From: Ascidiella aspersa
Taxonomy: Eukaryota
Length of the DNA: 64,000 bases
Assembly: GCA_963924565.1 (NCBI GenBank)
Contig: OZ004613.1
Location: 9,548,001-9,612,000 of the forward strand
Direction: 5' to 3'
Shown: positions 12,936 through 60,740 of the stretch, piece by piece
Layout of the letters: each line of letters opens with the position of its first letter
Numbering within the stretch: position 1 is the first letter of the stretch
The notes under the pieces: model-generated
What the model saw: only the letters and a program-made list of their open reading frames with translations
Databases searched by the model: none
What the model was told of the DNA's origin: nothing
Made by a program: the position numbers and the translations under genes

Positions 12936-13960
12936 GTACGTCTGCTATTTGCATTGGCCATTAGTGCTTTTCGGCATCTTTCGAGTGGTGCTCTTTTTTC
13001 GTTTTGCACTCTACGATTCCAGTTTAAAAAGTAAACGCATTTTCGTATCACCATACACATGATTGGCTTTTAGCTTGACCTAACGTACCAACTAGCTTTT
13101 TAATTGGTTATAATAAAGCAGGCAGTTAGTTCAAGGCATGGCTTCTATCGACTTTTCGCTCTTCCTTACACTTCGGGCGTAGATCTATAGTTTTGATAAA
13201 AGCTCATACTCTTTTTGATTAGGAAAAGGTTGTTTAATTTATAAACAGTAGTGGAAAGAACTTTAAATTGTATCTGTATTTTTTTTCAATTACAATTTTA
13301 AGAAAATATAGCTTCCAACTAACATGGCATGCACAGTGCACACAATTTTTAAAACCATTAATTTTGTATAAATTTGGGTGTTTTTGGTGATTTATTTTTT
13401 CAATTGCTTGAACTTAGTTAACTTGCCTTTTGAGATATTTTTTAAATTGCAACCTTTTTTAAAGGTTTATTTGTATACAAGAAAATTCTCCACAGCATTT
13501 ACCATGCTATTTTCAAAGAAATTGATTACAGAAACTTGTTCACAAGATTCATAGAAAATCATTTTTTAAGGCCTAAATCAAAAATTTTTGAAATATTGTT
13601 GTGGTAGTCACACTTATCACCAGTTATCAAAAGCCGGTTTGATAATTTTACAACATTTAACTTGAAATATAAAAAGTGGGTAATTGTCATACTGAGCAAT
13701 GCTTTAATTTACTTGTATGGGTTTTCCTGTTGTTAAGGGTAACTTCAAAAATTGTAAAACTGGTTAAATATTTATGTTTTGCATGAGATACTTATGATTG
13801 CATGGAAAATAAGTTAATTATATTCTAGCTAACAATTTAGTTTCTTTTATTTGTTTAATGATTTTTGCATGATTACTTTTACCCTAATCAAATCTCAATG
13901 CCTGATTAACTTACACTGCATTTATAGTTGCCTACTTGGCTGCAAAGTAGCCATTTTATA

Positions 13961-14572
13961 ATGTTTTTGGGTGTTTTGTGTCATAGAGTTGTGCCGAAAG
14001 CTAGTCGTGTAGCACTAGGTGGCAGCATTCCAAGCAAGTTTCACAAGTCAGCAGCAATGGACGATTCCAAAAAGCCATGGAAAAGTGCAAAGTCAATCTA
14101 TGACTTTACGGTGATGGACATTCACGAGCAGGAAGTGTCCCTGCAAAAATACAATGGCCTGGTTGGCTTGGTCGTCAATGTGGCGTCCGAATGAGGCCTG
14201 ACCAAGGTCAACTACACTCAGCTGCAGGAACTGCACGAAAAATACTCACCCCAAGGTCTTCGCATCCTCGCCTTTCCCTGCAACCAGTTCAACAGCCAGG
14301 AGCCAGGCTCTAACGAGGAAATTGACAAGTTCGCTAAAGAAAAATATGGTGTACAGTTTGACATGTTCGCCAAGGTTAAGGTGAATGGCGACAACGCCGC
14401 TCCCCTCTTCAAGTACCTAAAGTCGCACAAGAATTGCCCGGGCACCCTGACAAACGCCATCAAGTGGAACTTTTCCAAGTTTTTGATTGATCGCCAAGGT
14501 ATCCCACAAAAGCGCTATGGACCGAAAACCACTCCATTTGAATTTGAAGAGGACATTAAAAATCTCCTCTAG
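13961..14572 (+). CDS. GPX4: Phospholipid-hydroperoxide glutathione peroxidase (GPx4/PHGPx-like selenoprotein), intronless CDS, 203 aa, Sec at TGA 14192-14194
   Basis: ORFs 13928-14194 and 14363-14572 are one frame separated only by TGA in the active-site motif VVNVASE-U-GLT. Downstream motifs ILAFPCNQF..QEPG and IKWNFSKFLID..G...RYGP are present. There is no oligomerisation loop (TLTNAIKWNF), as in the monomeric GPx4 class. ATG 13961 gives a basic presequence; a second ATG is at 14057. A splice acceptor lies at 13926-13927. Confidence 0.95.
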
Positions 14573-14740
14573 TATTTCAAAGTGTTGTGTCCTGTCTTTC
14601 TTTTTTTCATATATAAATATGTATACTTAATTTTTCCTTTGATCCGAATTCAGTGACAAGGTACTCGTGATTTGTTTTGTGAATTATACAAGCAGTTCAA
14701 TTTTTTGATTTGCTTCCGAACCTCTTCATTATTGTGGTAT

Positions 14741-14810
14741 TGCAGCCTTTGTATGATGACTGATTTACAAACCATTTAAATGGTGAAATTAGTCTGATGT
14801 GAGGATTGCG
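14741..14810 (+). promoter_or_regulatory. SECIS element (type II) in GPx4 3' UTR
   Basis: ATGAT core at 14753-14757, stem GACTGATTTAC/GTGAAATTAGTC, unpaired AAA, ministem CCAT-TTAA-ATGG, 3' TGAT at 14795-14798, and lower helix GCAGCCTT/GAGGATTGC. Confidence 0.92.
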
Positions 14811-14977
14811 TGTAATGGTGGTTCATCTGGTTAGTGAGTATACCAGGTGTTCCAGCTTTCATTGCGTTCTCAAGGTTGTTTTATCAAAGTTTAATGTTGA
14901 TGTTTTTTCGTTTTATGTTAGGAATTTCGTTTTAGACATTATAACAAACTTTAAGGTCAAAAACCTGTGCATATAGT

Positions 14978-38600: not shown

Positions 38601-41600
38601 ATAATGAAAGAAAGTCTAAAGAATTCCTGCCTATTAATAGCGACGTTAAATCACACTCACATATTGTTTGCATCGACTTCGGCGATAAAACTCTCCTTCT
38701 GCGCGAATTCGCTTGACACCGGGGCGCATGAAAAGGCCACGCAATGGCCAACGGCCGCGGCCCGGTTGTAAAAGTCGGACGCCTTGGCCCTCTGGGCGCC
38801 GTCCATAGGCCTGATGGCCGTTCCGTTCCAGTAGTGGGCGCACAGGTCGGTCACCAAATCGCCAGAACCGGCTACCAGCAGGTGGTCTTGCGCGTCTGCG
38901 ATTCGGTGAATTTGGTTAGAAAACCATAAATCAGATGGCATTTTTTTGACAGCAGATTTAATAAAATACTAGAAAAGAAAGTGCTGGTAAATCACAAATC
39001 TGGTTAAATCCAGTCTATAGGTAACTTATTTTGCAAATGACAGCTTCACAAACTTATAAACGGGTAAGTTTTAAAACTTTTGTATTTTTGAAAAAACTGC
39101 GGTATACGGTTGTTTGTGACATGTTTGTTTGCTTTTTTAAATATAACTCTATTCTTGGTGTGTCGCTAAAAAGAGGAATTTCCAACCAAATGCGAAAGTT
39201 AGTAATAAAGCCCAAGATCCGAATGTTTTATTTCATGACGTCCTAACAACCAAGCTACAAATCAGCAACAAAGCAAAACTCACGGTTAACCTTCAGCATT
39301 TCAGTGTTTTATAGCTAACCTAATTGTCTTAGCATTCTATTACTTGCGGTCATAGGTCACTAAGCACATGGGGCCTTGATATTGTACTTTCCCTTACTTC
39401 AGTTGTGCACTTCATGTTCATTAAGGAAATATGCTGCAGACCCAAGTAATTGACCCGGCGGGCGGTAGTTTAGTGGCTCTTGCTCTTAACTGATAAAGAA
39501 TTCAGTATTGGATCGGGCCCACCAATTTTACCTCACCTTGCATTTTTGCGACAACTACGCCGTGCATGTAAGACAGGAATGACTCTTGACTTGAGGTGTT
39601 GTGATGCGAGTGAGCTGGACTGGTGGATGGCTTGCTGGACGGCTTAGCATACAGAGTCACAGTTCTCTGGAAAAAAAGGACAACGCGAAAACGTTAACCA
39701 TTCCGTTACAATAAAACATGCGCTATTGCAGATTACAAAAAAAACACCGGTGTTAGTTAGGAATTCCGTCGGTTTAAACGGCGTATCTAGTCTTTCATGC
39801 GAGGTTTTCTTCGGCTATACCACACCGTTCTATATAGCGATTCAGATTAAAAAACAACCACTTAACAACGACCTATAAAGATCAGCATATTTTATTCAAT
39901 GCCTTTTGTAAGTCCAACAACTCCCTTTTTCAATATCATTTATTTAGTATTGATATATCAGGCGACAAAGGAATAGGTAAAATTGTGCGAACGTTTGGAA
40001 GGCATCGTTAGAAAGCGGCGCTGGTATATTTTTTTTACATGTAATGGCTAACTCATAATTTTGGACACCAAAATTGTCACTTAAAATAAAATACGCGTTA
40101 AGCATCGTAATATGCTTCACATCTAGCTACTAAACTTCAACAATTTTGTAAATAAACTGTATACGCAGTATTGGGCAACTAGATTTATTTTTGCTATTAA
40201 AGTTAGATTAAAATTTAAGGACATTTTTTAGTTTTTCAATAATAACTTGAAATTAGAAATAGAATTAGAGTATATCAGTTTTCTCAAACTAGTTTGGAAT
40301 ACGAATTACTGAACGCTTGAAAATTAGAATATAAACTAAAGTTTGAACTAGAATAACATTAAATTATTCACAATCAAGTTTAAATAGCAATTTATTTTCA
40401 GAAAAATGTAAATAGTGAATATTCCTGTGCCAGAAATCGCCTATGCTTTTTCGGCTGTCGTTCCGCCCGAAGAGCATTAATTAAAATTCTTTATTTCGAC
40501 TTTTTTCGACTACTTTTGAAAAAGTAGCGTTTTTGGTAAAACCGACTAAAATTGGAACTAGAATTAGAGCCCACACGCATTTCGTGAATTAGCTCTAAAT
40601 CATTGAATTAAAAAACTAAATAATATATAGTTGTCCAAGTCTGCGAATATTTAACGAAACAAACCATAAGGCACCTTAGGAACATAAAGGAACGTGACTT
40701 CGTCGTCAAAACCGGTAAGTTGGGTTAAAGCACGAAGACCGCTCTTGATCGTTGAGGCTCCTTTATAGAAAAAACAGACATACCTTGTACAAAACAAAAA
40801 CCTGAAGAATTAAAACATGAAAAGTAAAGGTTCAAAGTTCAAAAGATAACGGATTTCAGCCGTGTGGTTGCTATAGTTGATGTTGTGTTATAACCTCAAT
40901 CATTGTTAGTTAAATTGTAACGAATGTTATGGGGCCAACATTTCGCTGAAAATATGTTAGGAACAATTTAATATTGTTGAAAATTTAAAAAAGGTAAAGT
41001 TTTATGTGATATTATAACAGGTTTAGTTCACCTGGTCCCGAGAGACCCTTGCTTTGCGCAATACTCCCGATGTCCTTTTGGTGCTGCCTTAAGATAGATT
41101 GTGGCTCACACTGATCAGTCGGTTTTGCATCACCTCCTTTGAGCTTTAAACAAAGTGTCGAAAGACGTAAAAATACGACAAATATTATATTTTCCACCAT
41201 ATCAGCACAATGCAATAAAGGGTTACGCGGACCTTGTATTGTTCTGTTAAATCAGTGGCCCAACTATTTGTTCTCTCGACCCCTTTTAAGTTCTCGATAA
41301 CTTGCGCGACACGCCAATGATAGTGTATGATACATAAACTAGAGTCAATAGAAATCACATTTCAAACTTACCAGACGGATTGTATCAAAATTTGGCTAAA
41401 ATGTCCCGATTTAAGTATGCACAACAAGTTAAAGTTTCGGCTTGAGCGTCCGTTTATTCTTATTAGACATTGTTTGATTGAAGCTCACTTGATTCACAGC
41501 AAAAGCCACATAGACACAAATGTAAGACTGGCGGTTGCTTTTGCTCCTTCTATACTGCTGAACGTTTAGTTTACATTGCTTAGTACTTTCTAGAATTTGA

Positions 41601-44600
41601 ACTAGAATCACATTTAATTCTTTAGAACCAAATTAATTTAATCGCAATTTATTCTTATAAGAACGTGAATGGATAATTCGCTGTATGCGTGTGCTAATTT
41701 TTATGCCTTTTTATGCTTTTTGGACTGTAAAAATACGTCTTTCCAACTAAAAAATTATAATCAAAATTCTGTTTTTAAACTGAGAGACTAAAAATGCCGT
41801 TGGACAAAGTAGTATTTTTGGTAATATCCGAATTAGATTATAATTAGAATTAGAGCACTCAAGCAATTCACAAATTAGATTAGAATTAGAATTTGCCGCA
41901 TTTTGCTCTAATTCAATAAATTAGAAAACTAGATTTTATCTAGTTGTCCAAGTCTGATCCAAACGCATTCATTTCCACCAACCTGCTGCAAAATACTGGC
42001 GACGTCGGCCAGAAGAGCTTGTTCTACGGCGTCCTTAGCGTTGGGAAAGTTGGCCTGGCTGATCTGCAGACTCGGGTGGGTGACCAGGATGTCAAGGCAG
42101 ATCGCCTTCAAGGACGAGGTCTGATCGCGCCAGTTTGGTTCGTCGAAGTAGATCTATGCAGTGTTTTTTTTTTCGTTAAAAACAGGTGGCATTGTGCAAC
42201 TTTTCTCTTATAAAGAAATTGTGGAGGTCGTTTAATATGCAGTAGACTCGAAGCCTTTAAAATAACTTTTAGGAATTAGAGTCGTGAAAAGTACCCAAGA
42301 GTGTATAGCAGTGATTCCCAAACTGTGTGCAGCGGCGCAATACTGTGCTTTAAGTGTGCCGCTAAACTTTTTGTAATTTCGGAAAATAGAGTATTTGAAT
42401 TACCAATAGGCATACACGCAAACATTATAAACTTAAATACGCACTATCCATTACAAATTATTCACATTGAGACATTTACATTCGGTTTGTCGTGTGTTAA
42501 GGGCGTTGTAAAATAAATCTATTCTTGTTCTGTTAAAAGTGTGCCGCGAACAAAAAAGTTTGGGAACTACTGGTGTATAGTGTATACTTTACGATTATAT
42601 AGTGTATACACTATACAACTAGAAATGTATGGATGAAAACTTTTAGTTTGTCTAAAAAAGTAAGTTTAGTAAAATATGTGTATTAAAATAAAGTTTAAGC
42701 ACTATAAGCAGCTTTGGACAAAATAATCAAGTGGCCTTCAGGAAAAATATCCAAGCCTTTTATCAAGTTGATTTTAAATTAAGAAAATATATATTGAATT
42801 TCACGCGATTTTCGTGTTAAAATTGTTTGAACTTATAAAGGATGTTTTTGAAACTAAGAAGCCGGAAGCGTTACCTTGTTGGGATCCTGGGTATCTTGCG
42901 ACAAACTTAAAACTTCGATTTGAGCGTCCATGGAAGAGTTCGGTGGAATGGTTGCCTCCTAAACAATCGAGAATTTACAGGTTTATGAAAAAATTAAAAA
43001 AAAATTTTTACCGCACAGTTTTACGAAAAAAATTTAAAGATATTCAATATATTTTATGAAAAAATTCCATTCAAAGACTTTTTAAATAAATTTATTGCTT
43101 TTTAAAGACCTAAAATTCGATCGCTCGACGTTATTTTAATATAATTCGAAAACAGAACAAAACAAATTTAATAATCGGCAGAATAAAAAATGTTTTTTTA
43201 ACCGGGCTTACTTAGCAACACAAAATAAATGTAAAGACTATTGAAAGGCTTTTGAAAAAACGTAGGGTTTTTCAAAACACAAATCCATTCCAAAAACATT
43301 CAGAGAGATTTAAAAATGTGTGACAACCCTAAATTTAACATATTTTATTGCTAGATAGCAAACAATAGTCATGTAATGTTCGGCCTATGCTTTGTATTGT
43401 CTGAACTGGCATTCATAGAAACAACTAAATGATTTGATATGGGTATTGTACAATATTATAGTAAAGCACTCACAGTATCCAATGTTGTGTTGACTGGTGT
43501 TTCGTTGCTGCACTCTTCTTCTTTTTCTGCCAAATTGTAAAGTTAATTAGAAGTTTTACTATTTTATTAATATAGAATGTCATGTAGAAAAATGTTGGTA
43601 GTTGATTCGAACAATTTTTGCACACTTTTTTATGAAAACAGGTTAATTCAGAAAAACGTCCCAGCATTAAAAAAATAAAATACGTGTTTTTGACGTGTTA
43701 AAAAGTCTTTCTGGTTTGTATATTAAAATTTGTTTTTAAAGTTTAACAATTATGAATTTTAATACGCGCTTTGCTTAGATTCAGCAGCAAACGTAGCACC
43801 CTTTTCTAAAAAGGCAAAATTACAATTATTTTGATAATGAAAATAATACCGCTTTTGCCTTATTTATGAAACAATTTAGATACCATAAGAACCTAAACAT
43901 ACATTTTAAACTAAATTTCACGATTGTTTCGTTACGCGTTGTGAACATCGCAAACGACGTGTGTCAAAAAACAACTATTAACCTGCAAAATCATTTTTTA
44001 GGCTTTGGAAAGGTTTCGAAATCGAGGCTGTCGGGGCCGATCCGAAAAAGAAAACTTTCTCCGGGTAAGGATTAATCCAAGACAAGATGCCTTCCTTGTT
44101 GATGCAACAGAGAACCTGTGGAGAAAAACAACGACTGCTTAAAATTCAAACGAAGCCATTTAACTATACAGGACTGAATGTAACACAATTTATACGGAAT
44201 ACTTAAACATGCTGCCAGTGTTGTAAACCAGTCAGTTTGAAATGAGTAAGGTCCCAGTCAAGTCATTTTAAATAAATAACAAGTTAAGTGCGTCCAAAAA
44301 AAAATTTGTCCAAAAGATTCAAGTCAAGTAACTGAAAACAGTAACATAAGTGCACATTTGACTTAATCATTACAACACTGCATGTTACTCTAATTTGTAT
44401 ACATTGAGAAGTTAGGTGTATACCCCCTTAAAAATAAGAAAATCGTGTACATTATTTTGAGTACGATTGTATTCCTTTCTGTGTGTCGCCGCACTGTTAT
44501 TATTTTATACACTGACAAACCACAGCAAAGCAAAGACAAATATGTAGAAGTGTTGCGCCAAATATACTGGATCCTCTACTTCACGGCCTGACCGGTACAC

Positions 44601-47600
44601 AAGGCAAAAATCGTATTAAATGCAGCAGTTACAGAACACTTATAATAAAGGCGAAAACGGTATGCGGCCAGCGACACAAAGAGGGCTCGAACGTTTAGTC
44701 GCAATTTCCAATGGTCCCAGGCTCCCCAAACCGGACTGTTTTTAACCACACAATCTTCAACAAAAGTATAAGCTACGAGAAAAAGGTGTCAATGAGAAAC
44801 GTGAAAAGATGAGAAATACCAGGTGAAATGTAATGTGCCGCAAGTGTGAAGATAGGTGAGAAAGAAAGTGATAACGCAATGGTGAAAAAACGCATACAAA
44901 ACGAAGAATTTATTTTTGCGCACAACGCATTGAGTGCAAAAATTTATGAATTTTACCAACCGTTAGTGAACCGAGGCTGTCGAATGACCCGGCAATCCTG
45001 GTCGACACTTTTTTGCTTCCAAACAAAATCTCCGGGATAAGATTGACCCACGACGAATTAGCGACCGAAGACTGCGCAAAATGAGAAAAAATGTAAAATT
45101 TTAAAATTATGTTTCAAGGCGCAACGAACAGACAAAGGAATTGCAGACTTGAATTCAATCTATGTTAAAAAAATACTTTGGCGCATTTGGGGATGCTGGG
45201 AACCACTTCATAAAATAAACAGCATGCTATACAATCAAAGTCTCCCCCTTTTTACTTCTTGTACATTTCAAAATAAACAAAAAAGAAAAGTTTGCAAAGT
45301 CAAATAGATATATATATATATTTCGACTGAAATGGCATTTTTAGCTTTGAATTAGCACGAATCGATATTTTATTCACACAATTTAGCCCAGCGAAGTGGA
45401 CACAGAAAGACTGGTTACCTCCATGTAAATGGTTTGCGACTGCGCTCCGCTGATGCTTTGAACAGTCGCCGAACTGGGAAGCACTTCCTGAAAAAAAGAA
45501 GAAATTCAGAAATAAAGAAAGTCAATTGCGTAAAAAGAAGGCACGACATAATTTTTATTTTTTTAAAATGGAACAAAACAGAAAAATTATAGTTATGCCT
45601 TACATGGAAAAAATGCACTGTTTGTCGTAAATTTTACAAAAAAATATCAGTTTCGATTTTTATTAGTGGTAAGGCCACTGGAATATTTATTTCAAATTAA
45701 CTTTGACAACTACGCCAGTTTTGCTTGTAAATATATTCATCTAAATAGAGAAAGGTTCTGTATTTTTTTCGATTTCCTAAATGTAAAAGAATCCAGGTTA
45801 TGCCACTAAGGCCATTATAGTCAATACAAAGATTTAATAATATAGCTAATGTTTTTCTCTAAATAGCGACTAGGGATGTCCGATGTTATTGGTTAGTACT
45901 CGTTATTAAGTGATAGCATTTGTAGCCGTTCCGATACTCAATGATATCGGGACCAATCCGATACGAAAATGACACATAAAATCGAAGGTAAAATACAAAT
46001 TTTGGTTTAATACCCAATTTTGCTTGTTTGACCATAATAATGACGTCATTTGATAACAGAGGATCGCGCTACGTTATACCCATAATATCATAAAATCAGT
46101 ATCGGAATAAAATGCCAAGAGCCGGGCACCCCTATAATAGCAACCGTACATTAGTTGATTCATTACAAACTCAACTCCAACCATATAACAGGAAATCAGC
46201 AAAACCACATAACACCAAATCAGAGAAAAATGTCGCCCCATACCCTTTTCCCTTTGGCCGTTCGCTTTCCTCCGAGACACGGCGAAAGGGTTTTGGCTTC
46301 TCCAATCGCGAACAACGTGACCCAAATGACAGGGCAGGCGACGGGCAGAACGGGTACCAGGAACAGGGCAGGAGTAGACAGAAAGACCTCAAACCAGAAG
46401 GTTTCGATTCCCCATTCGGCGAACAGAGAGACTGGAACGTGGGTTCGGTTCAGCTCGCTCAGAAAGATGGTGTGGTGCGAGCGGAAAATGTACCAACCTA
46501 TGCCGATCACGCCCGAGCATATCTGTAGAAAAAAACGCCAAACAATTCCTGAAATTTTTATGCGTTTTGAAGTTACAGCCGATGAACAACGGCGAATGTT
46601 TCGTTCATAAAGTAATTTTGAAATAACTCATTTCCAAAATAATGTAATTCAAAGTCAAGTCACGGGGAAAAAATTGTTGAACTATTTAAACTTATAAAGC
46701 CACCCAATTTAGAGCAAACTTTTTTACAAGCAGCAATTAGGATAAAAATCAACCAAATTTGACATAACTTTTAACGATTTACGGTGAAATCAAGTTTTTT
46801 CAAAGAAAAAATGTTATCTTTATTTTTTTGCTACTTTGACCTGATGGAAGCACGGTTGTGCGAAGGCTTGTCAATATTTCAATGCAATGTGTCTTTAAAT
46901 AGTGCCACCTGATTACCCTATTTAGAATAGACAAATCCGTTCAAAGGTTAATTAGTTACAGTGATTACAAAGAAAAGTCAAGCTATTAAAACAGATGCGA
47001 CAGTGCAGCATGTTAACATTAATCTGTGTTTAAAACAAGGCATTAGATCAAAAAGTGATGTACAACTGACGAGGTAAGGTGCACTTGAAAGCAATTTCGT
47101 GATAAATCTTTTAAACGTTATCTGCACACTTTTCATTTGCAATTAGTGTTACTTTCAACATTACCACTAAATTCATTTATTTTTGATAGGCAACTCGACT
47201 CGATGACCGTAAAGTTTTTTCGCTGTCCTTGTGTTATTCTGTATAATCTTTTTCAACATTTGCAAAGACGCACAAAAAGTAAATTAAACCTTGAAACCAG
47301 CTTAAGAAATGCGACACCGTCCATTTATAGTAAGTTTAAATCACCCAGGAACCAAAAAAAATTTCTTCTTACCAGCATGATAGGAAATGCAATAAAGATG
47401 AACATGTACATCAGGATCTCTCTTCTCTTTCTTAACATGCTTTTGTTGTCGTCTGTTTTTGAACTCGCGGGCGGTGGTTGGTTTTCAATATTAAGGTAAG
47501 CCTCTAGGTTTTCAATAATGGGACTTTTTACGACCTTAAACCTGTTAAACAAACTTGATATACAAATCAAATAAATAAACAGCAACTTTCTAATGAAAAA

Positions 47601-49542
47601 TTCTTTTTATCGTTCATTTGTAAGAAATTAGACACAAAGAAGGAGCAAAAAAAGTTTAAAGATTTAAACTGTAATATACTTACCTGTGATCACATTGGTC
47701 TGGATGATTTGACATAATTTCACTCGTTAAAGTTTCATCCTTGGCCAAAGTTACGCACAAATCCTTTAAATTCAACATAAAAGAAGCTTGAAAAAAATAT
47801 GCGACCCACCAACGTAAAACTTAGTTAATTATTAAATATAACCTGGGTACAAATCATCCAATAATGAACAAAATTACACAGGACTACAAAGGTAGTCTCC
47901 AATAAAAGCTATTGTAATATTATTATAAACTAACTAGAAATAAAAAAAAATAATAATTAAGCAAATTATTTTTAGCAATTACCACAGCACATGTGACGTT
48001 GCATGGCGAACTTTGCCCAATGCACAAGTTAATTACATCACCGGTTGATATCAACGAAGTGGGAATAGATACTGGTTTTGACAAAGACCTACCTTAAAAA
48101 CAGTAGAAAACATAATAACGGACGGTAAATAGCTGCATTGACTCAATACAATTTAATCACCGCATAAATTATAGTTTCAAGTCATCTACTTTATTTTTCT
48201 AAGTTACCCTTTGTTGTAACTGTGGTAAAGCTGTATGATGGACTAGAAGCATTTGACAAGGATTCTGCCAGATTAAGGAATTCACGCAATCCTGACGAAT
48301 CAATTGTACAATCTAAACATAATGTAATTTTCAATCGAAATATGACGAAGGAAAATACTAACAAATCAAAATTAAAACAAATAATACAATAGAATCCTAT
48401 CGTATTTAAGAAATTGAATTTATCACTTGAACTATACATTTCAATCAAAATATCACAACGGAAAGTACTAACGACCGAGTCAAAACAAATAATACAATAG
48501 ATTCCTATCATATTTAATAAATTGAATTTATTGCTCGAACTGACCTGCAATGCTTTCACTTAACCATTTAAGCTTTTTGCAAACTTCGTTTTTTGCAAGT
48601 ACTGCTTCATGGCAGGATACAGCAAAGTTTAGAGCCAGCAGAATCAGGTAAATGGATCCCACCCAGTAATCACTCCTAAATTAGGAAACGCATCAAAAAG
48701 CAACAAAAATAGTAATGAAAAAATATGGAATATTTTGTTACTAAGGATTGCAAATTATAAGAATATGTGTTTAATTTTGAATATACAAAAAACATATTGT
48801 TTATACAACAACATGCTGGTTTAACGTTAGTTTTGCTTACCCACTGTCCAGTAAAATACCTCTTGCATAAAAGCAAAAGACACAGATTAGAGAGAGAAGT
48901 ACAACGGGCCATGGAAGAAGGGAACCAATCCCCAAGGCTGTCTTTCCAACCTGGATAATAAAATTTAAAAAAGTTTTTGGAAATCATAAATGGCAAAACA
49001 GTGTTCTTTTACTAGCAATATGTACATAACAATGCTAAAATTAAAATTAGAAGGAAAAGTTATACTATGTAACAAAATTTGGATTTAAATTGTATTTGTA
49101 AACTGCAATGGTTCAAACAGAGCTTTATTTATAAGCAAATAATATAACAATGTTTAAGTTTTTGGGAAAAAAATTACACTTTGATTACACAAAATTTGAT
49201 GAAAAAAAGGAATAAAATTACACTTTGTAACAAAATTTGATAAAAATATTTTATTCATTTGAAAGCGCTATGATCCAAACAAGTGTTTTTATTTATGAGC
49301 AATTGAACAAAATAATTTACCAAGGTTTCAGTTAATAGTAGGGGTAAAGATTAAGGGTATATGTTTTCAACAATCACTGATATTATTCTTTGATGTAGCA
49401 TATTTATACCTATTAGACTTAGGACAAGCAGTTTTCTATACATTACCTTGGTAACACTTGGTCTTTCCAACTGGGCTCTTAGTTGGTCAAGTTCCTTCGC
49501 CAAAGTGGAAAAATCCAAACAGGAAATGTCTTGCATCTCCAT
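23614..49542 (-). CDS. TMEM94: Transmembrane protein 94 (P-type ATPase-like, ERMA), 32 exons, about 1344 aa
   Basis: Exons (high-low): 49542-49447, 48950-48841, 48675-48545, 48312-48208, 48092-47983, 47763-47684, 47541-47373, 46522-46244, 45487-45419, 45071-44961, 44115-43983, 43526-43474, 42958-42875, 42153-41983, 41143-41032, 40760-40675, 39666-39537, 38895-38661, 38277-38127, 37321-37192, 36729-36632, 36225-36126, 35266-35158, 34473-34341, 33411-33286, 31932-31769, 30547-30346, 29998-29955, 29103-28943, 27821-27728, 26835-26730, 23766-23614. All are GT-AG and phase-consistent. Hallmarks: GQIFLGMVSLQYQ, ACIRFVHF, VFAEKMGIEVGWNCHISL, AKLPRGIE...IENVDNVPLLVPLFTDC and C-terminal EFGTKLGMNSPF. 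Confidence 0.93.
32776..33210. repeat. Tandem repeat, 3 x 142 bp, inside a MITE in a TMEM94 intron
   Basis: Near-identical units start at 32778, 32920 and 33062. They explain the three repeated pseudo-ORFs in the track. Confidence 0.95.
35759..36108. mobile_element. MITE family with CCGATA/TATCGG subterminal repeats (representative copy)
   Basis: TAGGGATGTGCGATA ... TATCGGCCATCCCTA. Related copies at about 24480-25145, 28840-28931, 31200-31320, 37530-37925, 45871-46132, 55680-55740 and 58425-58680. Confidence 0.75.
37979..38100. repeat. Degenerate short-period (7/14-bp) tandem array (catcaaatattcaaa-like)
   Basis: Repeated aacatcaaatattc / aaacatc units. Confidence 0.7.
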
Positions 49543-49973
49543 TTCAGAGATGTCGTAAGCAGCCCAAACATACCAGTTATACTTTATTGCCTAAGATCAA
49601 ATTTCTAAGGAACTTGAACTAGGATAACATCAATGTACGTAACTTAAAATGTAGAACAGGTCGAGAACACCAGCAATGAGGAAGAAACACAATCAGAAGG
49701 TTGATCCAACAATATCATAATTGTCAAGTTGAAATAGAGGTTTTTCGCAAATGCACAATATTGTTATTTTGCCTACTCCAATATAGGTTTTTCAAGTTCA
49801 ATGTAAATTTCACAATAGTAAAAACATTTTTTTCACATTTGAAAAAAGACAAACAGCAACACAATATATCAATGAGTTGTAATATAAACTGAATACATAT
49901 ATGTTGTGATTCCAATGTTCATAATCTTTTTATTTATCAAATATGGCAGGTTAATTTATTTCCTAGTCCAAAG

Positions 49974-52559
49974 TCACACCTGTGTGTTTGTGTCTATATC
50001 TTCTTCAGAACCAGCAGCATTTAAATCCTGGCCAGATGCAGTGGTTGGATCACTTTTTACAGCGTGGACAATATAGTTGAGCTCTGTGTTACTTGTCCAA
50101 GACCACTTGTTGCGAAAAGGGTCATAGCACATCCCATGTAACTTGCGCAGTGGGCAGTTTTCTGTAACAATCAACAAAAAAGCTAAATTAAAAACTAGTA
50201 TACTCTTGCTCTTATTTTAATAATATAAAAATTTCAAACATGAACTCCACCATTTAAAATTCATTTTAAAGCAATATTATAACAGAAAGAATACCTTCTA
50301 GTAAAGCGGATTCAATTTCATCTGGTGACAAAAATTTGTCCCAGTTATGAGTTCCTGGAGCAACAACGTTAAGAACATATTCTGCAGCAACAATTCCCAG
50401 AGCATATGAAAGATAGGTCCGATTCATTGTACTGATAAAGAGAGAACCTCCAGGCTGTATGAGAAGGAAAAGTCAAAGCGTTAGTTATGTTTCACAATCC
50501 TGGCTAATATTTTACTGAACTGCTGTGAATACTACATTAAAAAGACAGTGTTCTCTAGGTTTTTCCAAAGATAAAAAGTATTAATAGCGAGTGAGCAGTG
50601 GAGTTAATTGCATATTAAAATACAATAGTGTGTCAATTTTTTACACTTACATAATTAACCAATATTTGTTTCAAGATATAAATCTGAAAATCACAAACTT
50701 GCTTGCATAACTGCAACAATTATCACGTAAAGAAGTAAACAGATGATATGTCAAATTTTGCAACAGTGGAAAAATGGGTGCTGGTCTAGAATCCTAGAGC
50801 AAGAAACATTTTTTTGGTTAGGGTGTGGGTAGGTTAAGCAATATTTAAAAATAATAAATTTGATAATACTTTACCCACCCAAACACAAACACTAACCAAC
50901 ACTGTAACCCAAATATTGTGCGTTGCTTTAATAATTGTTTGAACGCTATGGTAGGATTCTAGACCAGTGCCAAATAATCAAAAAGTAGTTTACTGCAATG
51001 CTGATACTTACCTTTAACACTTTACTGCACAAGCCAATGAAGTTGCGGTAATCGTTGACATGTTCAATAACCTCAGAAGCCACGACTGCATCAAACTTAA
51101 TTGACCCAACAGCAACAAGGTCCTCAAGCCATGAATCAAGGTACTGAAGATTTTCTAGGTCTTTGTCATCTCCTCTGTTGAATTTGCGAAACCCAAGTTG
51201 GGCATAAAAATGTCATATAATGCAATGCTTCTCAACCGGTGGGTTGCGAAGCATTTCAAAATGTTACAGTTTTCTATTAGATCGGGAAATTATTGCATTA
51301 TCATTACTTAACATTTCTGAAACAATGTAACTTATATGCACCAATCCAATATGCAAGATCAAGTTTCGCAATAAGAGAAAATTGCATGCATGTGTATACA
51401 TTGTTTCTTTTCTCATTCATTTGTTTTTTATTGGGCATATCTTATTGTGGATTGCACAATAAAACTCGCACTAAAAGTGGGTCGCAAACTGAAAAAGGTT
51501 AAGAAGCACTGATATAATTGATTATACAAAAACTAAATATATATGTAAAGTTTTTTTTTTATATCACAATATTACATGTTATTCCCACATTTTTTCTTCA
51601 TTTAAAATGTTTTATTTTCATAAAAGCGAAACCTGTCAAACAGTTTGTAAGCACCTATGTGTACGCGCAACTTCCAAAGCATCTGTGGATGAATCGATGC
51701 CAACCACAGTGGCTCCAAGTCTTGCAAGTGGTTCCGACAAAATTCCGGCGCCACAACCAACATCCAAAAGCTTAAAACAAAGAACTACACTTAATATAAA
51801 TATCACTTACTATAATAGAAGATCGCCCATGGACAACAGGTCAGTTGACATATCGATTTGCTACATAAAAACTAAATGTTTATTACATAGAAACTAACTG
51901 TTAATGGCTGTTTATAGTTTCTTTTTACACTAACTTGCCTCTACTCCTTCCAATGGTTTAGGGCAATTTGGCTTTCCATGGCCTTCATAAAGCAAGCAAT
52001 CCCTTATAAACGGAACACGCAGATTGTTCATGGTGTGAAGTGCCATCATTTCACCTCTTGTATCCCACCAACTGATAATAAACATTCAAATTGTTAAATG
52101 ACATTTTAATTACTTTTTTATGGTTCAGTTTCTATTACATTTATGTTTGCACCACATTTACATATAAATTTAGAAGCGTTTTATTCTTGCACAACATAAC
52201 CATGAAGGCCTAAAATTCCTAAACAACATTAGATCTAGCTCATAATACAAAATATCGCTCATAATACAAAATCTTTTTATTGCCACAGTATTAAAAAATC
52301 AGTCACTTTCTAACCTTGGGGCTAACTTGGAAAACTTTTCAGTTTCCTCTTCAGAAACTGAGCTTGAAAATGGCATTATTTGTTGGACTCCACCACCCAG
52401 AGTAGGCTTTTGCTTTACAGCAAGAATCTTCAATTTTGGATGAATCAAGAAATATGAAAGATCTCGTTTTGGGGGGTGCAAAGTTAGCTTTTCAGATATG
52501 CTTGACATCCTGAAGCCACGAAACAAGTGCCGCCCACACATATTACACACATTTGCCAT
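49974..52559 (-). CDS. COQ3: Ubiquinone biosynthesis O-methyltransferase COQ3, 6 exons, 334 aa
   Basis: Exons 52559-52315, 52071-51939, 51770-51655, 51174-51012, 50454-50295, 50161-49974. Motifs [80 protein letters not shown] and GTHNWDKF. The N-terminus is presequence-like. Intron 2 is GC-AG. Confidence 0.95.
50777..50971. mobile_element. Palindromic MITE (same family as 16505-16701) in COQ3 intron 4
   Basis: GGTGCTGGTCTAGAATCCTA ... TAGGATTCTAGACCAGTGCC. Confidence 0.8.
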
Positions 52560-52908
52560 TACTATTAAGTAACAAAAAACTACTAATGTTTAACCTTTCA
52601 ATGATGTGGCCTAAAAGAAGTAGTCCTGTTTAGTACTGGCAATAAATATCAAAACCACAAAAAAATGCATAAAAGAAAGCCAAAATAATGTCAGGTATTA
52701 CTTGAAGCTAAATAATTACCAAAGAAAAGCATTTAACAAAGGAAAATAAACAAATAAATCTATAACCGAAAAAAATGTTAGGTGTTGACTGAAAAAATGT
52801 TAAGAGATAGTTTTAGAGTCATTCAAAATGTTAGGCTTGTAAATCTCAAAACCATCTGCTTAAACAGGATATATATTGCAAGAAAACATAATAATTGCAA
52901 AATATAAG

Positions 52909-55900
52909 TCATGGGCCTGCAAATGCATTGGTTAAAAGTTCTAGCGAAGTTCTTTCAGCACATGAAGGTAATTTGGTCAGTGTTTGTAATGCAATGTCTT
53001 TGTGAAGTTTTCTTGTTTCGTCAGCTTGCGAAAGAATTACCTTGTTTTGTCGGAGATTTTCCAGCAGCTGAAATGGAAGCATAAACATAGTCACAAACTG
53101 GGCTATGGAGTTAGATCATAAAGGACTGACTACCCAGAAAGTACTGAGTCCAACAAGTGCATTACCAAATTTTGAAACGGCCGCCAACTGTAAATTGTAA
53201 AAAGGTAATAGCAAGTGATGGAATATTTTCCAACCATGTAATGTTTGTGAATGAATTATGGGACACCACTATAAGTGAATTGCTCACCATTCACCTTATT
53301 TTAATAACGCGAATGGGTGAAATACAGGCAGTAGAGTCAAATCTGGACTCAATATTTTTGGCAAAATTTCAAATTTGGCGGAGTTTGACTCAGGTTATTT
53401 TTAACCGACTTGAACTTGAGTTATATTTATCCGACTCTGCATGATTGGTCACATTTACAATCGTTAAATCTGTTAAATTTGTCTTTAATAAGTTTTACCG
53501 TTTAAATCAAGCATAGTAGAAAAATAAACCTAATATATTCACTTGATACATAAACTTTTGGCATGTTAAAAATTAATGAATAATCAATTTCTCAAACACT
53601 AAAAATTTATGGTTAATAGACCATTTTATATATAAAGTATAAATCAAAATGTTTTTGTCGGCTTTGTTCATTGGTAGAAAATAACTAATAAAATATATAT
53701 ATGAAAAAAGTATGAAGTTTAATGGTTTTTAACCTCTTCCTTCAAAACACAAAAATTTCCATCCTTTTCAGTTACAAATTGCTTTATCCAATTAAGTCCA
53801 CCATTGGCCTCTGCAGCAAGCACTGCAGGCAAAGTACAAATTTCTGACAAAAAACTTTGATTAGGCCCATTGTGCTTATCACCGTTGCCATTTTTGACTC
53901 TTTGAATATCAAAGTTGGCCTGAATAGTCAAAAAAAATTATAAGTATTTCTCCTTAACTACCAGTAAATGATTTAAAGATGACTAATTAATTTAAAGTCA
54001 TTTAACAAACTCAACATAAACTGAGAAGATTGTGTTTAGTTTTCATAACAGAAAATCTAGCAAATAAAATAAAGGTTGGGTTAATTATACAAACGTTTAC
54101 AGAAATATCATAAAACTGGTATTCATTAGACAAAACCATTTGAACAATTAAGAAGAGCATTTCTTTAAATAAAAGACAAAATCTTTTTTCGCACTTATCA
54201 ACCATTAGACTATTAAATCGAAAAGTATATCTTAGTACATACATAAATTTAAATTTTAGAAGGGCAATTAGTATTGTCATATTTAGCAAACAACTTCGAG
54301 CATCGCTGTGAAAAACAAAAGTCGGTTTATGGCTGTGATAAACAAGAAAGTCTTGCATTGATAAAAATATTATCTCAATACAAACCTGCTTGGCCAACAT
54401 CATGTGTTTTCCAAACAGGAAAGAAATTTCTCCATAATTTTCTGATCTTTCTGCAAGTTCAACAGTTGCCCGACAGGCCTGTACACAATTAAATATATAA
54501 ATACAAGTTAAAAAAAATAAATTTATTCCAGTTATTTTTTTAAGTAAGATAAAACAATAATTATTAAGCAATAAAATAATAAGAAAAGCTTTGTTTAGGG
54601 GAAAAACAACTTACATTTGATAAAAGACTGCCTTGGACAAGGTGAGTAAAGTGCTTCCAAGATTCCAAGTTTGCCGGAAGGTCTTCAATCGAGGAGATGC
54701 GAGAAAATTCCCCGTTCTCCGGCAGGACAAACAAGCCGTGCGACATGTCACGTATGGAGGAGGACATCAACTCAACAACCTGAACAAAATGCCAAACTTG
54801 GTATCAGAAATTTAATTATTGTAGCACTTTTGTGTTGACTAATGCGTTGAAGAACGGGTGGCACCGTTTAAAGCGGCTACATCCTTTTCTGGGGAGGATA
54901 GCACTTGGTGTGAATTTTGCAGTCTCTGTTTTCTCAGCGCTGCATGATTTTGGTGTACGATTTTGTTTTGTATTGCATAATTATTGCATTGTGAATCGTT
55001 GGGTGGATACCACAAGAAGTGAACGCATTTTAAGGACTGCTTGCAGTCTCTGAGAGAGACCAGTTGTAGCCTAATGCAAGCACTTGGTGTGCAACTGTGC
55101 ATGTGTGTTTGCCTTATACTGATTGTCATACTGTAAGAATAAATGTCTTGCTCAAAAATGTAAAGTCAATCCTTATTCTTAGGTGCTACTTAGGGGATCG
55201 TGTCTGGAACTAGTCTGCAACAGTGGTTAACTTCAAGAGGTGTGTAAACAGCAATTCGGCATTAGGTTTTGTACTTGAATACGAAGTGCAGGACTTTCTT
55301 GCGCTTTAGCAAGCTGATAGTTTGGGGCTTTGGGCAATACGTAAATGTCACCAATCGCTCAAAATGAAATTGCAGTTGATAACAAAACAAACCTTAGAGT
55401 TGCCAAGTTCAGACAAAGCGACGCATGCGTTAGCCAACAAGTAATCGCCACTGAGCACGGCCATTTTGTTGCCAAGCTCCATTTCCGATCTGGAGTTTTT
55501 GTTTTCCACTTTTAGGAGGGTTTCAATGTCGACAAGACCACGATGAATCAGAAACGCAGTGTGAATCAGCTCAGTCAGTTCGGCCAATGATCTCTGCCTA
55601 TAACAAAAATTAGAAATATTGCTGATTAAATAGCTGCATACTTGTGTTTCCATATAAAAAACTTGAAGATGAGTAATACAATTTGGTATGTGCGATACTT
55701 GACATTTTAATCTGATACCAATGATGTCATTTCTATGCTTCAACAAACAAAATAGATTAAATTTAAAAAAAATTAAAACAAAATTTTCCAGTATATTAGG
55801 CCAAAATTTTCCTTACTGTTAAATGTTTAATTGTTAACCTGTATTTTTTGATGTGTTTACCTTTGAAGAGAGAAATTGCCACAATTCTATATTACTGGAA

Positions 55901-57345
55901 ATCCCTAAATCGAACCATAAAAAAAAAAACATGAAAACAAAGTCACCAGCAGAGATGGATCAAGGGGGTATTCAGGCTGATGTCTCCCCCAAACTATATT
56001 TTGTCAATTTTTTTTGGTAAATAAAAAAAATTGCACCCACAATATGTTTTAAGGAAATCTGTTCAGTCCAAAGATGCAATGGATTCTACAGCATCTTATG
56101 TTGTGTAAACTTCACAAAGTGCAATTTTTGTTAATTTATACGAACGCTATCATTTAAGAAAACATGTTTATCTCTTTTATGTGCCTAATTGCGTTTACCT
56201 ATTTAAATTGAAAAGTTCTGCCAATTTAAACCAACTAAATACATTTTTCGTGATTCGCAAGATAAGACTGATTTAGGCTGCAATTTGCGCACAACTTTAA
56301 TGAGAAAATTTGTTTTTAAGATTTATTGTTTTATGATGCATCCGTAAAAAATTCCTAAGAAAAATCGTGGATCTGTTCCCGGTCACAAGATTACCTGCTG
56401 TAAGTTTCACTTGCTTCTAAGCCTCCATCTTTTGCAGAAATTACTTTAGACAGAAGCAGGACAACCAAGCCACGCACTTGTACATTATGCTTTGCATCGA
56501 ACAGCATGCCCCTACAAATGCAACACAAACCAAAATTAAAGCAGATTTTTGTAAAGCAATTAAAACTGAAATCTGTTGGTTTATAGTAAACTAAATATAA
56601 ATAGTGCAATTAAGAAAATTTAGAAAAATGCTACTAAAAATAAGTTAGAAAGACTTTTCAAGAAACACATTACAGATATACCAAAAGTGTTTAAATCATT
56701 TTAAATCTTAATATTTAAACAATCCACCTTTAAGCATAAAAAATAGAGGTCTTTGCAATTAAGACTCACTTTAAAATATATATATATATATATATATATA
56801 TACAGTATAACAGTATGCATATACCTTGCAGTTTTAATGAGTGGATGGTTAGTACGCACAAGCTTTCTTAAGTGCAGGGCAACTGCACTCAGTTCATTGC
56901 TCAACAGTGCACGAAGACTAAGAAACGAGGTTGGGAAGCCTACTATCTTCTCGGCATCATAAACAGCTTTATTAATGGCCTGGTTTGAATCCTTGCTCAG
57001 ACCATTTACTGTTGCTTGTAAAGAGGTGGACTGGTGCAGACAACGAGTTCCCAGCAAGCCTGTAAATAAAAACAAATTGTCTATAAAAGCAAAAATAATT
57101 AACTGAAATTGAAGATCATAAAAACATAATTTAGCTGCTATTAAATGAATAACTATCATTGTTACTTTAAATGTTAAGTGAGCTTAATATACATGCTAAT
57201 TTACTTTTAATAAATTTTATACTTCGTTACGTTACAGATTTATTACTAGTGATTAGCAAACAATTATTTCGGCAACAAACCTTTAAAAATGTCAACAATG
57301 CAACTTACGTAAACACTTCTTTGCAGGTTGGATAAAAACACTCAT
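52909..57345 (-). CDS. PDSS2: Decaprenyl/polyprenyl-diphosphate synthase subunit 2, 8 exons, 398 aa
   Basis: Exons 57345-57309, 57059-56825, 56511-56395, 55597-55393, 54779-54615, 54478-54386, 53919-53734, 53067-52909. Motifs [44 protein letters not shown] (HRG replaces DDxxD, diagnostic of subunit 2) and [17 protein letters not shown]. Presequence [18 protein letters not shown]. Confidence 0.94.
56777..56801. repeat. (TA)n microsatellite
   Basis: Uninterrupted TA run in PDSS2 intron 2. Confidence 0.9.
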
Positions 57346-60329
57346 GCTGTTGTACGTTTCTTTGTGTTGTATATTTAAATTAAAACATGTTTTCCGCCTA
57401 AGTAAGCAAAAGCAAGGAACATAAAAACCATGATATCAAAAAGGCGTCAGAGCAACACTGAAGTACAAGATAAGCAAGCCCTATATAAAAGAACGCTATA
57501 TGCAAGGCAGTATTTTTTTGCGTCTGTCTTCAATGGAAAACGTTTCTACTTCGGGAAATTCCCTGCTTAAATGTACAGTTCTAGCGGTGGCAAAAACTAA
57601 ATTTGCAAAACATGTACGTCCAATTCCAATATGTCGTTAGTCCAATAAAACTAGTGTTAAAACGTATAAACACTTAATAATTTACCTATGAGCAACGAAT
57701 CTATTTTTCTTTTAACAATAGAAATTGGAATGTAGTAAATGTTTTTGAAGGGAAAGCTAGGGATGCTCGTCTTATCTTCTTGAGTCTTCTGGCGAAATTG
57801 CCTCACCATATTTTAACAAGTTTCCGTCCAACTTTTGAGTTTTTGCCACTTTTTTCAAAAATTGTTTCAAGTCACACCTGCAGCATTGTATCGCACAACT
57901 TGACTGACAAATGTATTTTATAACCCATATTATTTATCTGGTCTGAAGGTTATGGGTTTGTCATCATTAACCCTTTGAAAACTTCCATACTGTTAACTTA
58001 TTTGTTGCTCAACATTTTATCATAGTATCGATCGTTTTCACCTTATAATCCCATACTTAACTTTAACTCAAACCCATTAACACTAGTTACACATAACCTC
58101 ATGCCTAGCAATGGAAGTGATCATACTTCTTTTATTATATAGATAAAGAGGATCATTTGATTCATAGCTTTGACCCTTACACAGATTCCATCCTTGCAAT
58201 CCTGTACATTTTATAGGCAACCCTCAAACCCCAAGTATGTAAGTGATCTATTGCACAGAACTGAAAAAAATCAAATTGTGGTACGAATACTATATAAAGG
58301 TTTTCTTAAATATAATAGAGTAGAACAATTAACTTTAAACTTTTTTAACCAGAGTTAATTATTTACACTAGATTATAAAATTATAGCGTATTTTTTTAAG
58401 GTTTCATTAAATGCATGCAACTCGGGCCAATAGTATTGTATTGTAGTTGATATTTGATTCCAAATGGTTTTGTCAATACTTGTCCAATACTATGTTAAAT
58501 ATTGGTGCCAATCTGATACAAAACAAATATAGAAATTCAAGATATTTTGCACTTCAATGCAAAGTTTCTTTGTTAAAAGGTAAATTTATCATAAAATAGC
58601 AGGTTAATAACTTTGAATTTTGTCTATTTTGCTTCCTTGAGCATACTATTGACAGTATTGACACACATCAGGCATCCCTACATGCAACTGGGTATTACAA
58701 GCAAATCCTGGCCCCAGTGTTATAATACATGGAACATTTTTCATCACATATTGACAGATATTTATTGCCGTATCAATGAAGCCTTACAAGGGAATTTGTA
58801 ATATAATATTTTAAAAAGAAAGTTTCTTTTTATAATACAAGAGTTAGATCAAACTAATAATTTAATTTTTCGCTTTCAATGATTAAAAAAAATGATCTGG
58901 CAATATTTAAATCGATTAAGAAATTATCATCAGACCTACAATTTATTATAGCAAGGACCTGTGTTTGGACAGCCTTGTATAACACATGAAATAGACTTTC
59001 TATGAAAAATAGTTTTTACATTAAACAGGAATTCAGTTTCTTGCGACAAGTTAAGTCAGGTGTGCACACAATATGCAGTAAAAAAACTTGAATGTGCATC
59101 AGCCATTTAATATTTATTCTGCATTCTGTGGTAGGTGCACATCAGAGATTTTTTTCAGAACAAACATTTTTGCATAGCAAAATTAGTTAAACACATAATT
59201 CAATAGTTTAAAAATAAGGTTGGTTAGGATAAGACCTTCATCCTCCAAACAGGTGAAGAAAATTGCCGTGCATATAAGTCTGTTTGGTCTGTTAAAAAAA
59301 CTCAATGGTGCATTTGCCATTCTTTCTACAGTGGTAAATAATCACTTAACGTTTAGATAGTATTTATGCCTACAAACACTGGTCTGCATTCTGGACACCA
59401 ATCAGCAGCATTTCCTGGCACTTGCAGAACCAAATGTTGAGTTGTGCATGTGTGCAATTAAGGTTTTTTTCACACCTTAGGTTTGAAATCCTGCCATAAA
59501 TTAGCTTGTTTTTAAATTTAAGCGCACTATAAACCAATTCAGGTGTGCACATAACATTCTTTAAAAAAATATCGTGTGTGCACCTGCCAAGGAATGCTTA
59601 CTGGAGGGACAGGTGCTCACTAGAGGGACAGGTGATTTCTTTGAAAGCAGTTTGTGTGCACAATTGAAAGTGACACATAAATTCTACAAAAAGTTTGCTA
59701 GATTCTCAAACTTTATGTGTACAAAACCTTGATTGCACACCCGAGATCTCAGCATGAAATACAAACTGGCCACAACACAAAAAATATCGGAATTGGTCTT
59801 GAATCCTACCACAGCATTTAAACAATAATTAAATCAACGCACAATATTTTGTTTAGGGTTTCTGTTAGTGTTTTGCTTAAGCTACCCAAACGCTAGCCCA
59901 AATAGTGTTTGTTGTGGTGTGATTCTAGACCAGCTTCAAAACATCTTATTGCCAAAAACAAATTAATGTACCAAAACTATGCATAAAACAATAAAAATTA
60001 GGTTCGAGAATTCATTCATATCTAAGAATTTTACAATGACCTATCCTTGGATCTACCAAACTCTGTTGCTAAAATTATATAACAAATTTTGAATGTAAAA
60101 ACTGGGTTTTATTAACTCCTAAATATTTCCACAGGTACAGAAGCACAATTATGAATTACGCTACCCACAAACAAAAGTTTATCCAACAGTTAGTGGAAAT
60201 GTTTATCCAACAGTTAGTGGAAAATGCGTGAAAAAAAACGACAAATAACAATTGGATTAAATGCCCTTTAGCGAAAGACACGATATGCGCAATCTGTAAA
60301 CTGCACGGAAACGTTAGGGAGCACTAAGC

Positions 60330-60740
60330 TTAAAACCTCAGCTTTTGGAAGAACCACTTGTTCTTTCCGGTCTTGTATCGCTCCTCCAGCTTGGCTTTAA
60401 CTTCTCGCCTGGCCTTTCGTCGGCCGCTGGTATCACGGATTGCCTCCTTATTAACCACGGCCTTGTCGATTGGAACGTCGACGGAGTAGCGGGTGGGCAT
60501 CAAGTGGTTGTAGTTGACCACCTTGACAAAGGTCTTAACCTTGCTGCGCTTTTTCAGCTTCTTCTTTGACATGCGCTTGGTGACTTTTCGGGGGTACCGG
60601 TCGATTCCGGCCACCAGGGCGTGCCCGTAGGGTCGGTCGTGGGTCCCCTCGTCTTGGTTTTTGACGATGACGGCTTTGCGACCGGCGTAACGGCCCGCCA
60701 GGACCAGAACGACCTTGTTTGGCTTCATAAACTTGCCCAT
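60330..60740 (-). CDS. RPL27: 60S ribosomal protein L27 (eL27), intronless, 136 aa
   Basis: Complete [31 protein letters not shown]...[12 protein letters not shown]...[15 protein letters not shown] with strong GC3 codon bias. Confidence 0.98.

Follow-up and report, generated by a model that had tools for sequence, protein, structure and literature searches.

In Ciona, about 20% of genes are carried in operons (2,909 genes in 1,310 operons; PMC2760879), and these mostly join functionally unrelated genes (PMC1488885, PMC2760879). The working definition of such an operon requires neighbouring genes to share a strand and the upstream mRNA to end less than 100 bp before the downstream acceptor (PMC2760879); in fact the cistrons directly abut one another (PMC2760879, PMC1488885). 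Downstream operon genes were trans-spliced in 12 of 12 cases, and AATAAA was missing within 40 nucleotides (nt) of the 3' end in 16 of 18 upstream cistrons (PMC1488885), an absence that is a tendency in Ciona and not a strict criterion. Here we analyse a 64,000-nt stretch of the Ascidiella aspersa genome (assembly GCA_963924565.1, contig OZ004613.1, positions 9,548,001 to 9,612,000; hereafter the window, with positions counted from its first letter), in which PDSS2, COQ3 and TMEM94 follow one another, in this order, on the minus strand. We propose, with a probability of about 0.48, that PDSS2 and COQ3 form a two-gene operon of the Ciona type that is resolved by a spliced leader.

An earlier reading made from the letters of this stretch (the sequence-only reading) had described three same-strand genes, 349 and 431 bp apart, and had taken them for one polycistronic unit. 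Re-reading the coordinates on the minus strand gave exact agreement with this layout, and all three gene identities hold by family or structure matches, that of TMEM94 through a central exon (all homology searches were run exon by exon, not on joined spliced proteins). The polycistronic unit fared less evenly. Its PDSS2-COQ3 part is supported by the lack of a poly(A) signal, an orphan acceptor with a branch point and an unbroken CpG-depleted block, whereas its extension to TMEM94 is opposed by two AATAAA signals, a distance of ~320-350 nt, a weak acceptor and a gene body with a CpG observed-to-expected ratio (o/e) of ~1.1.

A spliced-leader model presupposes an organism that trans-splices. We counted 354 exact genomic copies of the 16-nt ascidian leader with GT directly after it, against none for a reversed control pattern. 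Many of these copies are repeated in tandem in units of 584 bp, the arrangement that leader RNA genes would have. The presence of these leader genes suggests that the species trans-splices, in line with what the earlier model needed. No leader-like sequence above chance was found in the window, so the window holds no retrocopy evidence of acceptor use.

The PDSS2-COQ3 junction and its CpG footprint

As operon cistrons abut, the distance from stop to ATG at an operon junction should consist of a 3' untranslated region (UTR) followed by a 5' UTR. Gap 1, between the PDSS2 stop and the COQ3 ATG (Table 1), contains neither AATAAA nor ATTAAA. It does contain a strong orphan 3' splice site, whose TACTAAA lies 17-23 nt upstream of the AG at 52612-52611 and is one base off the classic branch-point consensus; no COQ3 exon is visible in the sequence upstream of this AG. 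Splicing at this position would give COQ3 a 51-nt 5' UTR with an in-frame stop and no upstream ATG. The presumed PDSS2 3' UTR would then span ~300 nt and end at the acceptor, which is the Ciona pattern. The AG at 52563-52562 is a second candidate COQ3 acceptor. We also considered ACTAAA at 52634 as a weak poly(A) signal and dropped it, since it is better read as the branch point. On these features, gap 1 probably comprises the PDSS2 3' UTR and, continuous with it, the acceptor and 5' UTR of COQ3.

Gap 1 and gap 2 (between the COQ3 stop and the next ATG, that of TMEM94) are each single copy across the 308.6 Mb genome and contain no notable open reading frame (ORF); the window has an N count of 0. 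The sequence-only reading had called both gaps AT-rich with no CpG promoter signature; they are indeed AT-rich, and CpG-poor, with GC contents of 0.27 and 0.30 and CpG counts well short of expectation (Table 1).

CpG content offers a view of promoters in these animals. In Ciona sperm, the DNA switches sharply between full methylation and none; the methylated domains cover transcription units, with a dip at the start sites (PMC3827831). CpG scores are uniformly high at ascidian promoters, while the genome overall is bimodal (PMC3333190). At this locus a depleted block, presumably germline-methylated, runs unbroken over PDSS2, COQ3, both gaps and the proposed TMEM94 exons 1-3, and ends ~1.3 kb past the COQ3 stop. 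The sole CpG-normal stretch near PDSS2 is the 57400-57800 patch, which is flanked by depleted DNA on either side (o/e 0.34 and 0.50) and which may hold the promoter of the unit together with a short outron. Beside it lies AG 57399-57398, a candidate site for adding the leader to PDSS2; the 20 nt ahead of this AG are 80% pyrimidine, and no exon is visible in the sequence upstream of it.

The single CpG-normal patch is also compatible with cis-splicing from one promoter, in which a 5' exon of the PDSS2 unit would be joined alternatively to the COQ3 or the TMEM94 acceptor as a shared first exon, and the candidate acceptors, being ordinary 3' splice sites, could pair with an upstream donor. As the organism has hundreds of leader genes and nothing makes this scheme preferable to leader trans-splicing, and as shared-first-exon loci are rare, we consider it highly improbable.

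We compared the junction with a locus that is an operon in Ciona, where DTL-URM1-CHERP is documented (PMC2760879). In A. aspersa URM1 is a single-exon gene of 97 amino acids (aa) on contig C2 (G000:C2:26.15 Mb), with CHERP next to it on the same strand. From the URM1 stop to the CHERP ATG there are 414 bp, and a strong acceptor precedes this ATG by 55 nt; AATAAA is absent from this gap, and one ATTAAA lies ~100 nt ahead of the AG. The gene ahead of URM1, 242 bp away across a gap that also has no AATAAA, is cardiolipin-synthase-like (CRLS1-like) and encodes 302 aa in a single exon. One CpG-depleted block covers CRLS1, URM1 and at least 7.5 kb of CHERP, and CpG-normal DNA begins ~1.7 kb upstream of the first gene. 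The URM1-CHERP junction thus resembles PDSS2-COQ3 in its spacing and in its unbroken depleted block. We note that the predecessor of URM1 is DTL in Ciona and the CRLS1-like gene here, so that the first operon member seems to differ.

For the proposed PDSS2-COQ3 operon, we infer the following RNA-level steps. Transcription would start in the CpG-normal patch (~57.4-57.8 kb), and the leader would be added to the PDSS2 mRNA at AG 57399/98. Past the PDSS2 stop the primary transcript would continue across a 3' UTR devoid of canonical poly(A) signals, and the leader would be trans-spliced onto COQ3 at AG 52612/11 via the TACTAAA branch point. COQ3 transcripts would take their 3' end from either of the two AATAAA signals downstream of the gene. 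TMEM94 would probably be a separate unit, perhaps with a short outron and transcribed from a site of its own within or close to gap 2, and would receive at most minor read-through from COQ3.

Several observations weigh against this proposal. Outrons of non-operon trans-spliced genes in Ciona peak at ~100 bp, with a mean of 438 bp (PMC4691747), and among trans-spliced genes that have an upstream neighbour on the same strand, tight spacing was seen in only 9.2% (PMC1488885). Given such short outrons and mostly non-operon neighbours, a small COQ3 promoter could be accommodated in gap 1. An AATATA at 52877, 32 nt past the PDSS2 stop, might further define a short PDSS2 3' UTR and leave ~240 bp free. 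The control comparison consists of one locus only, and the CpG footprint is a proxy for promoters that relies on low counts and on rules learned in Ciona and not in this species. Gap 2 is CpG-poor as well, and the same argument would mildly favour read-through into TMEM94.

The first of these observations fit three independent, closely spaced genes, with COQ3 and TMEM94 each having a small promoter within the gap and possibly a short outron and leader; for TMEM94, more than 300 bp would be left after the COQ3 AATAAA signals. Set against this arrangement is that neither gap carries the CpG-normal signature found at three unit starts (the RPL27/ARL6 spacer, 5' of PDSS2, and upstream of CRLS1), and that gap 1 contains a single CpG. 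Spacing this tight is also unusual for a 308 Mb genome, and it equals that of the conserved operon junction. We judge independent transcription of the three genes to be a serious rival, if a somewhat unlikely one.

The COQ3-TMEM94 junction

The second junction differs from the first. The sequence-only reading had itself cautioned that an AATAAA ~40 nt after the COQ3 stop weakens the link to TMEM94; we found this signal at +40 and a second one at +14. Given the two signals, the COQ3 mRNA probably ends at ~49910-49940. This predicted 3' end lies ~320-350 nt ahead of the candidate TMEM94 acceptor, a distance that exceeds the Ciona definition of less than 100 nt. The earlier description of a pyrimidine-rich AG ahead of each downstream ATG is accurate in that AGs are present at all three of the positions it named (52612-52611, 52563-52562 and 49592-49591), but the tract before the last of these is poor. 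An out-of-frame ATG at 49572 follows this AG and overlaps the main TMEM94 start. To judge by these features, the COQ3-TMEM94 junction does not look like one of the Ciona type, and TMEM94 would be the weakest member of the model.

Membership of all three genes in one polycistron would involve partial read-through of the COQ3 poly(A) signals and addition of the leader at AG 49592/91 or at a nearby AG. The genes do share a strand across a short stop-to-ATG distance, gap 2 is unique with reduced CpG, the depleted block extends beyond the COQ3 stop over TMEM94 exons 1-3, and no CpG-normal patch marks a TMEM94 promoter. Moreover, AATAAA was present upstream in 2 of 18 Ciona operons (PMC1488885). These points are countered by the distance left by the two AATAAA signals (~320-350 nt against a 100 nt limit), by the poor pyrimidine tract followed by an out-of-frame upstream ATG, and by the CpG content of TMEM94, whose body and exons (o/e ~1.1) are unlike PDSS2 and COQ3. 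At the control locus the downstream gene, CHERP, shares the depleted state over 7.5 kb, whereas the TMEM94 body does not. On balance a three-gene polycistron appears unlikely.

Table 1. Positions and CpG content of features at the PDSS2-COQ3-TMEM94 locus (window coordinates).
Feature	Position	Strand	Remarks
PDSS2 coding region	52909-57345	-	ATG 57345; TGA 52911-52909 ends last exon
PDSS2 exons 1 and 2	exon 1 ends 57309; exon 2 57059-56825	-	
PDSS2 later exons	inside ORFs 55348-55746, 54564-54770, 54011-54571, 53719-53931	-	
Candidate PDSS2 trans-splice acceptor AG	57398-57399	-	52 nt ahead of ATG; predicted from sequence
Gap 1, PDSS2 stop to COQ3 ATG	52560-52908	-	349 bp; CpG o/e 0.16 (1 vs 6.3 expected, P 0.013)
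Orphan 3' splice site	52611-52635	-	TACTAAA 52635-52629, pyrimidine tract, AG 52612-52611; best candidate COQ3 leader acceptor
COQ3	49974-52559	-	ATG 52559-52557; stop TGA 49976-49974; six exons
COQ3 exons	52559-52315, 52071-51945, 51770-51655, 51174-51012, 50454-50295, 50161-49974	-	
Gap 2, COQ3 stop to TMEM94 ATG	49543-49973	-	431 bp; CpG o/e 0.40 (4 vs 9.9 expected, P 0.03)
AATAAA signals after COQ3 stop	49960-49955, 49934-49929	-	+14 and +40 nt
Candidate TMEM94 acceptor AG	49592-49591	-	poor pyrimidine tract
Proposed TMEM94 exons 1-3	49542-49447, 48950-48841, 48675-48545	-	predicted; ATG 49542-49540; CpG o/e 0.19 (3 vs 16 expected)
TMEM94 central exons	38657-38941, 38100-38318, 37136-37333, 36106-36360	-	
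Confirmed central TMEM94 exons			CpG o/e 1.15
TMEM94 body	30000-48599		CpG o/e 1.09
Depleted block	48600-57199		CpG o/e 0.50 (119 vs 237 expected); TG+CA excess 1.28
Patch directly 5' of PDSS2	57400-57800	-	CpG o/e 0.98; 1.10 over 57200-57800
Upstream of patch	57801-60200		CpG o/e 0.34
RPL27/ARL6 divergent spacer			CpG o/e 1.09
ARL6 body			CpG o/e 0.41

The identity of TMEM94 comes from the central exon at 38657-38941, which matches PDB entries 9ywq ('Transmembrane protein 94') and 9jjk ('ER magnesium-transporting P-type ATPase', where ER is endoplasmic reticulum) with E values of 8e-11 to 6e-10. No family was matched when the TMEM94 exons were compared with Pfam, and an Atlas search with TMEM94 returned a generic P-type ATPase N-domain only. 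With strong splice sites only, the proposed exons 1-3 form one open frame that encodes two hydrophobic helices, as would suit the N terminus of a protein resembling P-type ATPases; where the start codon lies is likewise a prediction. Compared with solved TMEM94, these three exons gave no significant match. A 'WKD' frame for exon 2 was rejected because, given strong splice sites, only the alternative frame is open into exon 3. The sequence-only reading had also suggested, by association, a role for TMEM94 through Mg2+ as the prenyl-synthase cofactor. We found no support for this suggestion: the depositors name the protein an ER Mg2+ P-type ATPase, and guilt by association fails if TMEM94 is not co-transcribed. 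We therefore give no weight to the locus as a hint to TMEM94 function.

The TMEM94 introns (window 30000-48600) have CpG o/e values of 1.0-2.1 and contain ORFs that look like repeats, such as a tandem series of 60 aa each at 32778-33559 and a set overlapping on both strands at 46074-46610. Such CpG-rich introns are consistent with unmethylated transposable elements, as in Ciona.

Gene identities and neighbouring features

The PDSS2 exon within ORF 55348-55746 matched Polyprenyl_synt (E 1.8e-6) and, as the best family, solanesyl-diphosphate synthase (E 4.5e-13). When this exon was aligned to solved synthases, RGLVD stood opposite the catalytic DDVLDD, the first DDxxD motif. We take the loss of this first aspartate-rich motif to be the hallmark of the non-catalytic PDSS2/DLP1 subunit of decaprenyl-diphosphate synthase. 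By these matches the predicted protein has a long-chain trans-prenyl-diphosphate synthase fold minus the first aspartate-rich motif, as expected of PDSS2. Two further polyprenyl-synthase ORFs were seen in the assembly. One (G000:C1:25742130-25742912, minus strand) lies in a 352-aa open frame without stops and may be an intronless PDSS1; the other (G000:C52:38375-39070, minus strand; 303 aa without stops) is on a contig of small size, and contamination or a symbiont might be its source.

The exon borders of COQ3 are clean GT-AG sites with consistent phases. TIGR01983 (UbiG) is the best family for each of exons 2-6, which are collinear over positions 12-228 of its 228 (12-37, 53-90, 94-144, 145-195 and 201-228) and score ~196 bits, as a rough sum over exons, against a cut-off of 103. 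COQ3 also matches Methyltransf_25/11. Exons 2-5 are 39-62% identical to fish COQ3, while the values for exon 6 (32%) and exon 1 (26%) come from rows that MAFFT misaligned. In a profile search with fish COQ3 and the separately aligned window exons, all named rows were fishes, and unnamed Logan rows shared 59-74% identity with the fish query. A search of protein representatives with exon 5 found no close tunicate relative and no fused PDSS2-COQ3 model. The gene, which has a copy number of 1 in the genome, is by these matches a predicted UbiG/COQ3 O-methyltransferase.

The surroundings had been described as kilobase-scale and repeat-filled. This is apt for the TMEM94 introns and for the spacer between RPL27 and PDSS2, but not for the introns of PDSS2 and COQ3, which are short (~130-1100 bp). 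The RPL27-PDSS2 spacer measures 2.9 kb and carries dispersed ~180 bp repeats, with two old copies at window ~59423-59604 and ~59794-59963 and dozens genome-wide at 73-91% identity. Most of this spacer (57801-60200) is strongly CpG-depleted, a methylation-type footprint, despite having no visible gene.

RPL27 itself is an intronless 136-aa ORF with a GC content of 0.55 at window 60330-60740 (minus strand), its upstream part reaching ~60810. A pyrimidine-tract start, CTCTTTTTTCT, lies ~50 nt ahead of its ATG, and the ORF has the look of a functional gene and not of a dead retrocopy. Its divergent neighbour is an ARL6-like gene with its start at 61323 on the plus strand. Single-exon genes often head Ciona operons; the distance from RPL27 to PDSS2, however, is that of the whole spacer. 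Elsewhere in the window, at 13928-15571 on the plus strand, a GPx4 gene has an ORF broken by an in-frame TGA (14195), presumably encoding selenocysteine, and a NIPSNAP-like first exon follows ~780 bp after it. The CpG o/e across their junction is 0.5-0.8, which makes this another operon-like pair.

Comparison with known systems

None of the papers covered by our search links PDSS2, COQ3 and an operon together. The sequence-only reading had stated that the two genes are not adjacent in human. This is true, yet they occupy the same chromosome arm, with COQ3 at 6q16.1-16.3 and PDSS2 at 6q21. Because they share human arm 6q, the linkage of PDSS2 and COQ3 may be old and not newly assembled. The chance expectation is ~0.008 adjacent pairs among ~12 coenzyme Q (CoQ) genes in ~17,000 genes. 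Over all pathways, by our own estimate, a few chance same-pathway neighbours are expected per genome, and shared ancestry on one chromosome would raise the odds of PDSS2-COQ3 adjacency higher still.

With about one fifth of ascidian genes in operons that mostly join unrelated genes, one more operon would be ordinary, and PDSS2-COQ3 probably adds to this known, common kind. Its interest lies in what it would join, namely two steps dedicated to the same mitochondrial pathway. A stronger view would have the pair as a selectively maintained, pathway-coherent chordate operon descended from an old linkage, in which co-transcription would couple a prenyl-tail synthase subunit to a CoQ O-methyltransferase; we regard this as distinctly improbable. 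If the operon were confirmed and conserved in other tunicates, it would be a rare animal case of an operon that possibly serves co-regulation beyond genome compaction, and it would offer a handle on the co-expression of coenzyme Q genes.

Among more distant systems, the operons of Caenorhabditis elegans are alike in being polycistrons resolved by trans-splicing, some of which join related functions (cited in PMC1488885), and those of the SL1 type have no intercistronic DNA. They differ in belonging to another phylum, in using a dedicated SL2 leader and in having ~100 nt spacers, and there is no known homology of arrangement. Closer to hand are the short-outron, non-operon genes of Ciona (PMC4691747). 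An outron of their kind would fit either gap, chiefly gap 2, and PDSS2 itself resembles this type in having a CpG-normal patch followed by an acceptor. Unlike in such genes, the corresponding stretch for COQ3 would sit inside the PDSS2 3' UTR and has no CpG-normal promoter signature.

The closest likeness is to the operons of Ciona intestinalis/robusta (PMC1488885, PMC2760879), with which the proposed PDSS2-COQ3 operon shares an identical 16-nt leader, same-strand neighbours, an upstream cistron (PDSS2) without AATAAA and an acceptor where the presumed 3' UTR ends. The COQ3-TMEM94 junction is unlike typical Ciona junctions in having canonical poly(A) signals and a spacer of more than 300 nt. 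The abutting of the PDSS2 3' end and the COQ3 acceptor, the leader on COQ3 and a dicistronic RNA are, for the present pair, predictions from the DNA sequence. Finally, Ciona operons join mostly unrelated genes, whereas the pair described here brings together two genes of one pathway.

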